In this document: positions 3,774-25,596 of the stretch, in pieces
Layout: the number at the start of each line of letters is the position of its first letter
How positions within the stretch are numbered: position 1 is the stretch's first letter
Sequence record: MK250029.1
Direction: 5' to 3' (one strand)
Length of the DNA stretch: 64,000 bases
Notes under the pieces: generated by a model
Told to the model about the DNA's origin: nothing
Database searches by the model: none
The model's input: the letters and a program-made list of their open reading frames with translations, nothing else
Made by a program: the position numbers and the translations under genes

Positions 3774-4706
3774 ATGGCAATATATAAAAAGAATGAAGTT
3801 GATTTAGTGACGACATATACAGTTGAAATTGATTATTATTTAGATGACACTGTATTTAATGGGGAGTATCTAAAAAATGAAGACGGTCAGCTTGTATATT
3901 TTGGTTTACAAAATGTAGATGGTGATTATCTGAATAAATTAAGTGATGTTGATTTAACAAATTGTATAACATCAGATGATAATAACTATACAATTAAATT
4001 AGAAAAAGTAGATAATACAGCGGCTAAAATATTTGTAAATAAGCCAAAAAAGAAATTAACTTTAGATAAAAGAAAAAAAAGTGTTAGTTTTTATTATACT
4101 AATATATTAGGTAAGAATAACGTTCTATTTAATATATTTTATCATCCAAAAATATGTCATTATTCTAGAATTTATAATATATATTAGATTTATAAAATAT
4201 CAACACCAACATTTTCATTTAATAATTTATATTATGTAATTAATTATAATGGTACTAGTGGAGTAATAGATATAGATGTATTAAAAACAGCATCAACTAT
4301 TGATATTACATCAAATGATTTAGATAAGACATTTTTGCATGATGACAATTTTACTCACGCATTACCCTCAAATATAAACAATTTAATATATACATATTAT
4401 AGTACCGACCATACCTATTGGTATTTATATGAAAGTGGTTATACACCGATAGATCTTCTTAGTAAACATTATGATAGAATATTTTCTGTTAATACAGACT
4501 TTTCTTCATTAAGAGGAATTTTTGATTATAAAATGAATAGAATAAATGGCACGTTTAATTCTGGGGATGACGGTTATGTATATTTTTGTGCAATTAATCA
4601 TACAAATAATACAGTTGTACCTGTATTTAAAATGAATGGAAACACTATTATAGAAAGAAACAAAAATGTTCCAGAAGATACATATACAACATATATTATT
4701 AAATAA
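3774..4706 (+). CDS. Hypothetical beta-rich protein, possibly virion-associated, 310 aa
   Basis: ORFs 3774 and 4335 are in frame through one TAG at 4185-4187. Confidence 0.7.
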
Positions 4707-4727
4707 CGTTATGTAAATTAAAATATG

Positions 4728-4753
4728 GGATTTTATATTTAGACGTAGATATA
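4728..4753 (+). promoter_or_regulatory. 26-bp upstream motif, copy 2
   Basis: Identical to 3733-3758, 19 nt before ATG 4773. Confidence 0.6.
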
Positions 4754-4772
4754 AAAATATATTTTAATTTTT

Positions 4773-5618
4773 ATGTCAACATATAAAGAAACAACAGAAC
4801 GAGAATTTCATATAATTAATTTTATAGATAAATCATTAGTTACATTTACGCCTGATCCAAATATAGGTACGATAGGACTATTAGTAAAAGGTGTAAGTGT
4901 AAAGGATTCAAATAAAAAAGATGTTTTTATAGGATTAACTGATGGCACAAAGTTTAAATATTTAACTAATGATGATTATAACATCTATTATCAATCTAGT
5001 GATTCAATATATATTACTAAATATGGAGGTTCACAAGGTTGGCCTATATACTTGGATGTTTATAAAGAAAATATAGGGATAACAGCACATATAAAATATT
5101 TATATAATGGAGTATCTAACTATTTTTTTACTATCAATTACATACCATATGAAGTATTGCTTATGAATATTACTTATTCTGGATATAGAGAAAATATATA
5201 CTTATTTATTGAAGAATTACCATAGTCATACAGTGTAAGTCCAAATAAACATATTGCATTATATTCTGGTGTATCTGGTGATTTATCATCATATGGAACA
5301 ACTATATATTATGATCCTATGAACATATTAGTTGAAAAAGACAAAAGTATTAAGTATTATGTTGATAGAGGCGTAATAATATATAAATCTGGTGACCCTT
5401 TAAATCTTACTCTAGAAAAGTATATAAGAGAAGTAACATTTGTAAATAAACCTTATACAAATAAGGATAAGGATACAATAGAAATAGCAGCAACGGATGA
5501 AATATATTGTTATGAATATAGTGATAATAAGTGGAAATTAAATGGTCATTGTACATTTATGAAACCAAATGGTAAAAAAGAACCATTAGTTTATAAAAGT
5601 GTTGCACATTATTAGTAA
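4773..5618 (+). CDS. Hypothetical beta-rich protein, 281 aa
   Basis: ORFs 4773 and 5319 join through TAG; ends TAG-TAA. Confidence 0.7.
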
Positions 5619-24583: not shown

Positions 24584-24803
24584 ATATAAATTGTTTAATG
24601 AAACAAATTAATGAATTTAAAATTAAATTTANNNNNNNNNNNNNNNNNNNNNNNNNAATTAATAATAAATAACATATAAATAATATAATAATTAAAAACA
24701 AACGCTTATTTAATTTTCGTAGCGTTATGGATAAGTTGAATGTAGAATTCAGAAATTCCTTTTAGGACGAAGATACACCACATGGCGAGGTGGTGGAATT
24801 GGT

Positions 24804-25111
24804 AAAGTGTTTGCCTGCATTAATTTGTAGAATCCATCAAATTCAGTATCAGTTAGGATTAAATTTTGAATATGAGTAGTCGCTATTGACAAAAATATTG
24901 ACAATAATTAAATTATTGTTACCTGAGGAATAAGTGTTTATTAAATAAACAACGAAGAAGCTGACTAAGAAAACCTAAGGTCTTCATAAGAAGATAGCTT
25001 GGTAATACTGAGCCAAGATAATTTTAATTATAAGGTGCAGAGACTATACGGTGGGAACTAATAGCAAGTTAAGATATAGTCCAAACTTTATAGAAATATA
25101 AAGAGTTTTTG
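24804..25111 (+). mobile_element. Group I intron in the tRNA D-loop (308 nt, no ORF)
   Basis: P1 GGUAAA/UUUGCC puts U.G at the 5' splice site; P7 GACTAT 25042-25047 pairs with ATAGTC 25076-25081; terminal G 25111. Confidence 0.85.
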
Positions 25112-25126
25112 AGACACGAGGGACTT

Positions 25127-25466
25127 AAAAAATTTGAGTGCTCTATTGAGAAATCATAGAAGTAGAATCTCCCTAACGAAACGGAAACCTAATTATTGGT
25201 GACAATAATGGTGGTGACGAACTCACTAAGTTGTTATAGAACGCGAATCTATATTAAATGTAAATTGAAGTGTTACAGCATAAATGGCGAAGAGACTATA
25301 GAGGAGATACCTAAGTTAAAGTACACAAAGAATAATCATTTTTGATTATCACTATATATGAAGAATTTATAATAAGGAATGCGCATTACTTTAATATGGT
25401 AGTAAAATAGTCCAGACTACAACATCTTAATTTTAAGGTGGCTTATGTTAAAGTAAGAGTAGTAAG
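25127..25466 (+). mobile_element. Group I intron in the anticodon, U^AA (340 nt, no ORF)
   Basis: P1 ACUUAAA/UUUGAGU with U34.G; P7 GACTAT 25294-25299 pairs with ATAGTC 25407-25412; terminal G 25466. Confidence 0.88.
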
Positions 25467-25519
25467 AAAATCCCTTGGACAGTAATGTCCGTGCCGGTTC
25501 GATCCCGGTCCTCGCTACT

Positions 25520-25556
25520 AAAGTCTGATAACTAATATAGTTATCAGACTTTTTCT
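25520..25556 (+). terminator. Intrinsic terminator after the tRNA
   Basis: AAAGTCTGATAACTA-A-TATAGTTATCAGACTTTTT. Confidence 0.8.
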
Positions 25557-25596
25557 TTTTTATAATATATATAAATTATAATTAATAATTTTAATC

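Follow-up and report, generated by a model that had tools for sequence, protein, structure and literature searches.

The locus examined here raises the question of whether one phage tRNA gene carries two group I introns, one in the D-loop and one in the anticodon loop. The window, meaning the whole stretch of DNA that was analysed, comprised 64,000 nucleotides of one strand of sequence record MK250029.1. The source DNA was identified as Prevotella phage Lak-C1, which the 901 bases around the gene matched at 100%; the same 901 bases matched nine Lak-B genomes over their full length at 91.7-91.8%. Lak-C1 is a gut phage with a genome of 540 kb. The window had a G+C content of 26%, and its long ORFs contained 220 in-frame TAG codons, in agreement with the published TAG recoding of Lak phages (Devoto et al. 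2019, PMC6784885). UUA accounted for 62.5% of the Leu codons in these ORFs. The evidence presented below favours one tRNA-Leu(UAA) gene that is interrupted by two independent group I introns, with splicing inferred and not shown. The gene is composed as follows.

24784..24803, plus strand: exon 1, 20 nt; acceptor 5' strand GGCGAGG, U8 G9, D-stem 5' strand and D-loop as far as GGU
24804..25111, plus strand: intron 1, 308 nt; group I, in the D-loop
25112..25126, plus strand: exon 2, 15 nt, AGACACGAGGGACUU
25127..25466, plus strand: intron 2, 340 nt; group I-type, between U34 and A35
25467..25517, plus strand: exon 3, 51 nt; A35 A36, the remaining anticodon loop and the anticodon-stem 3' strand
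25520..25560, plus strand: intrinsic-terminator-like hairpin of 15 bp with a T-run, beginning 3 nt past the tRNA end

The GGU at the end of exon 1 consists of the conserved G18 G19 and one U, and the acceptor strand of this exon pairs with 25510-25516. Exon 2 contains the end of the D-loop, the D-stem 3' strand, G26, the anticodon-stem 5' strand and C32 U33 U34. Its sequence was identical in Lak-B and in L212, a phage contig described below; the first 6 nt take part in P10 of intron 1, the last 4 nt in P1 of intron 2. Exon 3 also supplies the long variable arm, the T-arm, the acceptor 3' strand and the discriminator A, and CCA is not encoded. Joining the three exons gave 86 nt, which ARAGORN identified as tRNA-Leu(taa). 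This is a class II tRNA with a 7-bp acceptor stem (G1·U72), a 3-bp D-stem, G18G19, the 7-nt anticodon loop CUUAAAA, a long variable arm, the T-loop UUCGAUC and discriminator A. It was identical to other phage tRNA-Leu(UAA) genes at 71-72 of the 86 positions, and positions 8-48 (about 41 nt) were identical to tRNA-Leu genes of other phages with an uninterrupted D-loop. Because of this identity over about 41 nt, the same architecture in Lak-B and the clean excision in independent genomes, the reading of the joined exons as a tRNA is not attributed to chance. The exon and intron boundaries are shown. Two terminator-like sites were found against 0.2 expected, and an equivalent hairpin was located 3' of the related genes in Lak-B and L212. 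Neither Lak intron contained an ORF of 50 or more amino acids on the plus strand, and hence no endonuclease ORF. A twintron was considered and rejected: the introns are not nested, a 15-nt exon separates them, and each occurs alone in other genomes.

ARAGORN with default settings detected no tRNA in the whole unedited window, and also none when only one of the introns was removed. The long-intron option led to two miscalls: Leu(gag) with one 640-nt intron for the raw DNA, and Phe(aaa) for the form lacking intron 1. The split tRNA-Leu(UAA) is missing from the published tRNA table for Lak-B and Lak-C1 (Devoto et al. 2019, PMC6784885). That table lists Leu-TAA (86 nt) in two genomes only, and the published coordinates correspond to intact tRNA-Leu(taa) genes in Lak-A2 and in one Lak-A1 genome. 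The absence of the gene from the published annotation is explained by its division into three parts by two introns, one of them at an undescribed D-loop site. Several statements of the initial annotation, which had been made from the sequence alone, can be judged at this point. The proposed phage origin held, as did the prediction that removal of 24804-25111 and 25127-25466 yields a Leu cloverleaf, for which the coordinates were exact. The middle exon of 15 nt was confirmed, the junctions GGT/AGAC and CTT/AAAA were confirmed at sequence level, and the statements that standard tRNA scanners miss the gene (true of ARAGORN and of the published table) and that UUA is a dominant Leu codon were also correct.

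Intron 1 matched the group I intron model RF00028 over 24919-25103 with 41.8 bits (E 5.9e-9 in a 1.3-kb search). The gathering score of this model is 50 bits; intron 1 lies below it and is therefore not listed in the search of the whole window with Rfam gathering thresholds, which returned no match. The structural elements assigned to intron 1 are listed here.

24801-06 / 24810-15, plus strand: P1, GGU/AAA with UUUGCC; U24803·G24813 at the 5' splice site
25112-17 / 24807-12, plus strand: P10, AGACAC with GUGUUU
24816-19 / 24826-29, plus strand: P2
24833-38 / 25050-55, plus strand: P3, UCCAUC with GGUGGG
24839-42, plus strand: J3/4, AAAU
24843-48 / 25006-11, plus strand: P4, UCAGUA with UACUGA
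24849-24964, plus strand: extra hairpin domain, closed by UCAGUU/AGCUGA
24974-25002, plus strand: P5-like hairpin with CCUAAG
25018-22 / 25027-31, plus strand: P6
25042-47 / 25076-81, plus strand: P7, GACUAU with AUAGUC
25056-59 / 25067-70, plus strand: P8
25086-25103, plus strand: P9 with GAAA loop
25111, plus strand: terminal (omega) G

A pair-by-pair check showed every helix of intron 1 to be canonical. The insertion of a hairpin domain at 24849-24964 separates the strands of P4 by 170 nt, and long inserts of this type also occur in a few relatives. The J3/4-P4 motif A(A/U)UUCAG was present in 99 of 122 phage introns having the GAGCCAAG…AAGGUGCAGAGACUA core that is common to intron 1. P3 and P4 were set at 24833-48 because this placement fits the family motif and covaries; the placement by RF00028 at 24955-24970 was rejected, as it contains several non-canonical pairs. 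The helix AGUCGC/GCUGACU predicted by RNAfold was likewise rejected in favour of the conserved UCAGUU/AGCUGA. Between Lak-C1 and Lak-B seven differences were found in intron 1, none of them in core helices: the six substitutions all lie at 24868-24943 in the peripheral domain, and the one inserted base lies in the P6 loop. The minimum-free-energy z-scores of the two introns against shuffled controls were only -0.70 and -0.73, so thermodynamic stability gives no signal for either of them.

In three unrelated phage contigs, pattern scans revealed homologues of the D-loop intron that occupy the same GGU/…G/A site of tRNA-Leu(UAA); the lineages compared were accordingly Lak, L212, L294 and L236.

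L294 (42.7 kb contig): D-loop intron at 929-1164, 236 nt, the sole intron; removal gave an ARAGORN tRNA-Leu(taa)
L236 (159 kb contig): D-loop intron at 887-1231, 345 nt, the sole intron; removal gave an ARAGORN tRNA-Leu(taa)
L212 (262 kb contig): D-loop intron at 4616-4900, 285 nt, with two further interruptions; exon 2 identical to that of Lak

The P1 U·G pair, P10 and the terminal G are also present in the D-loop introns of L212, L294 and L236, and the core helices follow in the same order along the RNA in all four lineages. Their sequences differ as shown below.

P3: Lak UCCAUC/GGUGGG; L212 CUCCUG/CAGGAG; L294 CAACUC/GGGUUG; L236 GCUUC/GGAGC
P4: Lak UCAGUA/UACUGA; L212 UCGGU/ACCGA; L294 UCGGUA/UACCGA; L236 UCGGUA/UACCGA
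Extra helix: Lak, L212 and L294 UCAGUU/AGCUGA; L236 AGAGUU/AGCUCU
P7: Lak GACUAU/AUAGUC; L212 GGAUA/UAUCC; L294 GACUUU/AAAGUC; L236 GACUU/AAGUC

Covariation in the four lineages is thus shown: P3 and P7 each occur in four complementary versions, P4 and the extra helix each in two. It gives strong comparative support to a conserved group I core and to the exact junction GGU/…G/A. RF00028 gave no match in the D-loop introns of L212, L294 and L236. A further copy may exist in L449, from a prokaryote genome collection, where it is cut off by the contig end; L336 was rejected as a homologue because it was a chance match. Scanning of the viral and genome collections with a short guide-sequence pattern gave 5 useful matches among 239, the rest being mostly due to chance, and the matches of an exon-2 pattern were mostly chance occurrences in coding DNA. 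The D-loop intron belongs to a small family, probably undescribed until now, that occurs in at least four phage lineages.

The group I nature of intron 2 is likely, although it rests on structure, covariation and homology and not on Rfam: RF00028 gave no match to intron 2 at E<=10, and none in its relatives L002-L004, L016 and L018. The following elements were assigned.

25123-29 / 25133-39, plus strand: P1; U25126·G25136 at the 5' splice site
25142-60, plus strand: P2 with GAAA loop
25167-72 / 25303-08, plus strand: P3, AUCUCC/GGAGAU
25188-25211, plus strand: P5 with GUGA loop
25235-53 and 25259-77, plus strand: hairpins
25294-99 / 25407-12, plus strand: P7, GACUAU/AUAGUC
25310-15 / 25395-99, plus strand: P8 with the 11-nt receptor motif CCUAAG/UAUGG
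25416-20 / 25459-63, plus strand: P9
25424-39, plus strand: P9a
25442-57, plus strand: P9b
25466, plus strand: terminal (omega) G

P3 and P7 form a pseudoknot with R/S-like sequences and were invariant in an alignment of 16 sequences. Pair counts in the same alignment revealed compensatory changes in P2, P5, P9, P9a and P9b, so that covariation is shown for this family too. The P4-P6 region is atypical. For P4 there are two mutually exclusive candidates, 25174-77 / 25230-33 and 25181-84 / 25231-34; one of the two shows a compensatory change, and the other fits the positional homology with the tRNA-Leu intron of L097. The core pattern of intron 2 was found at 27 IMG/VR loci, and at 16 of these removal at CUU/…G/AAAA gave a single-intron tRNA-Leu(UAA). 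Each of the two intron types is thus shown to occur alone elsewhere. A single-intron tRNA model around the relative in Lak-A2 (L002) gave no cloverleaf and was rejected. The intron of L097 scored 63 bits with RF00028, and it has in common with intron 2 the guide, P2 and P3 on the 5' side as well as P7', P9 and the terminal G on the 3' side. The family of intron 2 is tied to recognised group I introns because its ends are common to this RF00028-positive intron.

By BLAST, intron 2 was homologous from end to end to the DNA primase introns of the crAss-like phages cr116_1 and IAS virus, and it was also related to an element at a second site in Lak-A. Excision at the homologous boundaries in the primase genes of cr116_1 and IAS virus gave one ORF in phase 0 (…EFKEGKVTL/KIYQPFNK…). 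Relatives of intron 2 therefore occupy CUU/AAAAU sites in both tRNA-Leu and primase genes, and the anticodon-site intron is a member of a common gut-phage family. HNH-type ORFs were present in the relatives L059, L097 and L130. In the alignment of 16 sequences the Lak intron 2 is the shortest, with 340 nt versus 476-650 nt; whole peripheral hairpins or hairpin tips are deleted, and every core helix is kept.

The 734-nt architecture was present in Lak-C1, nine Lak-B genomes, four IMG/VR contigs and two metagenome contigs, and also in contigs of independent RNA libraries. Lak-A has an intronless tRNA-Leu(UAA) at the syntenic site, and a presence/absence polymorphism at this locus is thus shown. 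Scans of IMG/VR for Lak-type genes carrying one of the two introns without the other gave no match. The lineages differ in the acceptor stem, each version being fully complementary.

Lak-A: acceptor stem GCCAAGA/UCUUGGU; no introns
Lak-B: acceptor stem GGUCCAU/AUGGACU; two introns
Lak-C1: acceptor stem GGCGAGG/CCUCGCU; two introns

Between Lak-B and Lak-C1, which have the same architecture, there are five compensatory acceptor-stem pairs (exon 3 side 25510-14), a further compensatory pair in the variable arm (25479/25488) and one in P9b of intron 2 (25445/25454). All substitutions between these lineages in intron 2 and exon 3 are either loop changes or compensatory pairs. The lineage-specific acceptor stems may have been inherited from intact resident alleles through conversion. 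Since conversion could explain the differences, these are no proof of selection after intron insertion. A search of Lak-B1 revealed no second sequence resembling tRNA-Leu(UAA).

As far as 8 nt 5' of the tRNA and again from 25573 onward, the flanks of the Lak-C1 gene shared about 96% identity with Lak-A; their identity with Lak-B was only about 86%, whereas the split gene itself was about 98% Lak-B-like. A TAG-recoded ORF of 258 codons with two zinc fingers lies 3' of the intronless tRNA in Lak-A and is absent in Lak-B and Lak-C1; searches of Pfam and PHROGs recognised nothing in it beyond the fingers. The mismatch between flank and gene identities and the difference in this ORF therefore indicate that the lineages have exchanged the whole tRNA module. 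The flank identities and the distribution of CUU/AAAAU sites suggest that the tRNA cassette is mobile.

Six metatranscriptome runs contained the stretch, and the junctions were examined in four of them, as assembled contigs. The contigs covered every exon-intron junction in unspliced form, e.g. X14 record 9 (24746-25334) and X6 record 17 (24794-25132). No spliced joint at 24803/04, 25111/12, 25126/27 or 25466/67 was present in the four contig sets. Precursor RNA, or contaminating DNA, is present in the RNA libraries. Because such libraries and contigs would not capture short or rare products, they are uninformative on the 86-nt product, and the missing spliced joints are not evidence against splicing.

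Two loose ends were observed at 25131, where the 3' end of a related intron (…GUGGUAGG) was joined to its own 5' region, minus 2-3 bases. These joins match the expectation for a circularised group I intron; both belong to relatives other than Lak, and rearrangement at the DNA level remains possible.

The following mechanism is proposed. The locus would act as one transcription unit with the only tRNA-Leu(UAA) found in Lak-C1 and Lak-B phages, giving a precursor of about 740 nt that would end at the terminator (25520-25552). Each of the two introns is predicted to fold on its own. In intron 1 the internal guide GUGUUUGCC would pair with GGU of exon 1 (P1, U24803·G24813); after attack by guanosine, the guide would pair with AGACAC of exon 2 (P10), and G25111 would direct ligation. 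For the guide UUUGAGU of intron 2, the first partner would be ACUU in exon 2 (U25126·G25136) and the second AAA(A) in exon 3, with G25466 directing ligation. The 86-nt product would be trimmed, be given CCA and decode UUA. Catalysis in vivo, independence of protein cofactors, the order of splicing and the use of the tRNA are inferred only. Since the 15-nt exon serves P10 and P1 separately, the two reactions may proceed without disturbing each other, and the sequence dictates no order. With regard to the initial annotation, the claim of two separate group I introns held, the introns being non-nested and their splicing inferred, and the P1 U·G pair, P7 GACUAU/AUAGUC and terminal G proposed for both introns were verified pair by pair. 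The anticodon site is the classic cyanobacterial/plastid trnL position as had been claimed, but membership of intron 2 in that lineage was not shown. Of the checks it had suggested, the RF00028 search worked in part (intron 1 with 41.8 bits, below 50; intron 2 undetected), RNA data across the junctions were only unspliced metatranscriptome contigs, and the survey of relatives revealed that Lak-A is intronless, that Lak-B has both introns and that each type occurs alone in other phages. The suggestion that two splicing events gate the tRNA remains an inference.

Three other readings of the locus must be weighed. It could be a dead or dying tRNA gene in which one or both insertions, most plausibly that in the D-loop, no longer splice, the locus being kept only because the cassette is recent or selfish. 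In favour of this are the RNA contigs without spliced joints, the score of intron 1 under the Rfam cut-off and the lack of detection of intron 2, the loss by the Lak intron 2 of most peripheral domains of its relatives, and the possibility that the complementarity of the acceptor stems was inherited and not selected. However, the Lak-B/C1 substitutions spare all core helices of intron 1, those in intron 2 and exon 3 are in loops or compensatory (25445/25454, 25479/25488), and the deletions in intron 2 take whole hairpin tips and leave the core helices intact. Moreover, the cores of the D-loop family covary in four lineages, in two of which the intron is the sole interruption of a perfect tRNA-Leu, and no replacement tRNA-Leu(UAA) was found in Lak-B1. 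The dead-gene reading is therefore considered very unlikely. An artefact of assembly or curation is all but excluded: the Lak genomes were assembled from metagenomes, but the same 734-nt architecture was present in independent assemblies and in contigs of RNA libraries, and the agreement of the independent assemblies refutes this reading.

It is also conceivable, but unlikely, that these are genuine group I RNAs which need a phage or host protein of the maturase or chaperone type in vivo, or which splice in an obligatory order that times the tRNA supply during infection. Many organellar and some phage group I introns depend on protein help. Both Lak introns are AU-rich (about 30% GC), P1 of intron 1 is weak (6 bp with a 3-nt loop), P4 of intron 2 is atypical, and unspliced precursor was abundant enough to assemble in four RNA libraries. 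Against protein help stands the absence of an ORF in either intron, and against an obligatory order the use of different parts of the 15-nt exon by P1 and P10, so that none is forced by the sequence. One gene with two independent group I introns thus remains the preferred reading. A bolder version of it, put forward here only as a possibility, is that group I introns outside the anticodon loop, in the D-loop and perhaps the T-loop, are general and overlooked in tRNA genes of large phages and that double splicing in Lak-B and Lak-C1 is a gate. If this were true, phage tRNA repertoires would be systematically under-counted, and two ribozyme reactions on an 86-nt RNA would constitute a timer or a GTP/Mg-sensitive gate on the UUA-reading tRNA of Lak-B and Lak-C1.

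Under the preferred reading, the annotations of Lak-B and Lak-C1 gain a tRNA that had remained hidden and that would read the dominant Leu codon. The locus also shows that scanners, intron options included, miss or miscall such split genes. The D-loop family in at least four phage lineages offers ready comparative data. Two ribozymes around a shared 15-nt exon form a small natural model in which the folding of successively self-splicing introns, and the order and fidelity of their reactions, can be studied. The CUU/AAAAU sites in tRNA-Leu and primase genes, together with the different states of the locus in Lak-A and in Lak-B/C1, make it feasible to follow how introns move between gut phages.

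Among known systems, the group I intron of cyanobacterial and plastid tRNA-Leu(UAA), reportedly described by Kuhsel, Xu and Shub in 1990 and of subgroup IC3, interrupts the same tRNA at the same phosphodiester as intron 2 (U34/A35, CUU/AAAA). Intron 2 likewise has a U-1·G pair in P1 and a terminal G, and its L2 GAAA loop and P8 receptor motif correspond to a kind of tertiary contact that small tRNA introns are known to have. It differs in that RF00028 does not match it, no sequence relationship was shown, its P4-P6 region is atypical, and its relatives reside in gut phages and crAss-like primase genes. The 'enigmatic' tRNA introns reported from Lak phages are insertions of about 90 nt in the anticodon loops of Tyr, Phe, Gly and Thr tRNAs (Devoto et al. 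2019, PMC6784885). They were found with tRNAscan in eukaryote mode, were highly conserved across cohorts and were left unclassified (PMC6784885). The phage group is the same as here, but the tables for Lak-B and Lak-C1 do not contain the split tRNA-Leu(UAA).

Archaeal and Cyanidioschyzon tRNA genes resemble the Lak gene in having more than one intron per gene, D-arm positions included, and in being missed by standard scanners. Their introns, however, are short, of the bulge-helix-bulge type and cut by a protein endonuclease with subsequent action of a ligase, whereas those of Lak measure 308 and 340 nt, have group I cores and occur in a bacterial phage. The group I introns in protein genes of phages (T4 td/nrdB/sunY; crAss-like and Jug phages, PMC12880540) are the same kind of mobile ribozyme and are found in large gut phages as well. 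In Lak, by contrast, the host gene is a tRNA gene, two introns lie within 86 nt, and neither has an endonuclease gene.

A further comparison is with the bacterial tRNA group I introns surveyed by Williams (2020, bioRxiv 10.1101/2020.01.27.920355). Of the 21 settings, 4 are classical and 17 are newer, and every one lies in the anticodon loop; an intron in the T-loop of tmRNA was reported there too. The survey method examined the anticodon loop only. A cyanobacterial survey found no introns outside this loop. The introns of Williams (2020) and those of Lak are small, lack ORFs, are bounded by U-1 and a terminal G and are under-detected by the Rfam model. Intron 1 of Lak differs from them by its position in the D-loop, one base 3' of G18G19, and no tRNA gene with two group I introns was reported in that survey. 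The full-text literature searched contained no report of group I introns in the D-loop of a tRNA and none of a tRNA gene with two of them, and absence there is not proof. Within the limits of that literature, the D-loop introns probably represent the first family of group I introns outside the anticodon loop of a tRNA, and the Lak gene is likely to be the first example of a tRNA gene that contains a pair of such introns. The insertion sites of group I introns in tRNAs would thereby be extended from the anticodon loop to the D-loop, adjoining the G18G19 elbow contact.

The core pattern GAGCCAAG…AAGGUGCAGAGACUA was matched by 122 introns in IMG/VR, and 12 of these were located in the anticodon loops of phage tRNA genes, which ARAGORN identified as genes for Thr, Asn, Asp, Lys, Gln, Leu and Gly. 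Others of the 122, namely the tRNA introns at L059, L097 and L130, contain HNH-type ORFs. Lak-type genomes contained further matches to the Rfam group I intron model RF00028, away from the tRNA-Leu locus, with scores of 29-61 bits.

Introns in phage tRNA genes and RF00028 matches in Lak-type genomes
L052, L054, L063, L080, L092, L093, L100, L102, L104, L115, L119, L135: the 12 anticodon-loop introns
L005-L008: RF00028 matches, in Lak-B1 at 163.7-165.1 kb and in G001 at 20.5-22.8 kb

A related tRNA gene with apparently three interruptions was present at 4596-5316 of L212, an IMG/VR contig of 262,727 nt. ARAGORN yielded a class-II cloverleaf only after all three insertions had been removed. The anticodon loop then read CUAACAA, or CUUAACAA if counted as 8 nt. 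The insertion in the anticodon loop is too short to be a group I intron.

Apparent interruptions of the tRNA gene in L212
4616-4900: D-loop intron, homologous to intron 1 of Lak
About 4916-4998: 83-nt insertion in the anticodon loop
5033-5296: 264-nt insertion in the T-loop, with ends U|…G|

Another candidate, L461 (G002:C121:1-1538, the same place as L449), came from a collection of prokaryote genomes. The contig stops 16 nt past GGCCCCGUGGUGGAAUUGGU|AAAUUGUUUGCC… and appears to represent a tRNA-Leu gene with an interrupted D-loop that was truncated by the assembly.

In the Lak-C1 window, a masked run of N occupies positions 24632-24656, 130 nt upstream of the tRNA-Leu gene; reads were aligned from 24660 onward, beyond this run. 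Loose ends were observed at position 25131 in RNA-library contigs of X6 and X14, where …AAGUGUGGUAGG was joined directly to GGAACAC…AAUUUGAG. In this joint, a related tRNA-Leu intron has its 3' end linked to its own 5' region, which lacks about 2 nt, as would be expected for a circularised intron RNA.

Downstream of the intronless tRNA-Leu gene of Lak-A, a 258-codon ORF was found (L009:1140-1916 in Lak-A2; L010 in Lak-A1). It contains five in-frame TAG codons and encodes two C2H2/C2HC zinc fingers and a C-terminal domain without a recognised match; more than 360 unnamed relatives occur in metagenomes. The ORF is missing from the corresponding stretch of the Lak-C1 window (25518-25573). Because it alternates with the intron-bearing allele, it could be a free-standing homing endonuclease, but this is only a guess.

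An additional member of the intron-2 family was detected in Lak-A2 (L002:1390-1880; record of about 443.5 kb). Its P7 (GACUUU/AAAGUU) is compensated, and the copy is flanked by tRNA-like ends, with AGCUUAG…, the intron after about 22 nt, and then …AUGAGUUCGAUUCUCAUCUAAGCU. Its guide region offers no G for the U·G pair, and excision of this one intron gave no cloverleaf. Other relatives of intron 2 split primase genes of crAss-like phages (L003:2504-3072 and L004:2495-3099; likewise L024, L026 and L034), where the insertion site is CUCUU|AAAAUUUACC. This site and the anticodon loop of tRNA-Leu have CUU|AAAAU in common, which is compatible with the possibility that a short guide sequence chooses the target of this intron family.
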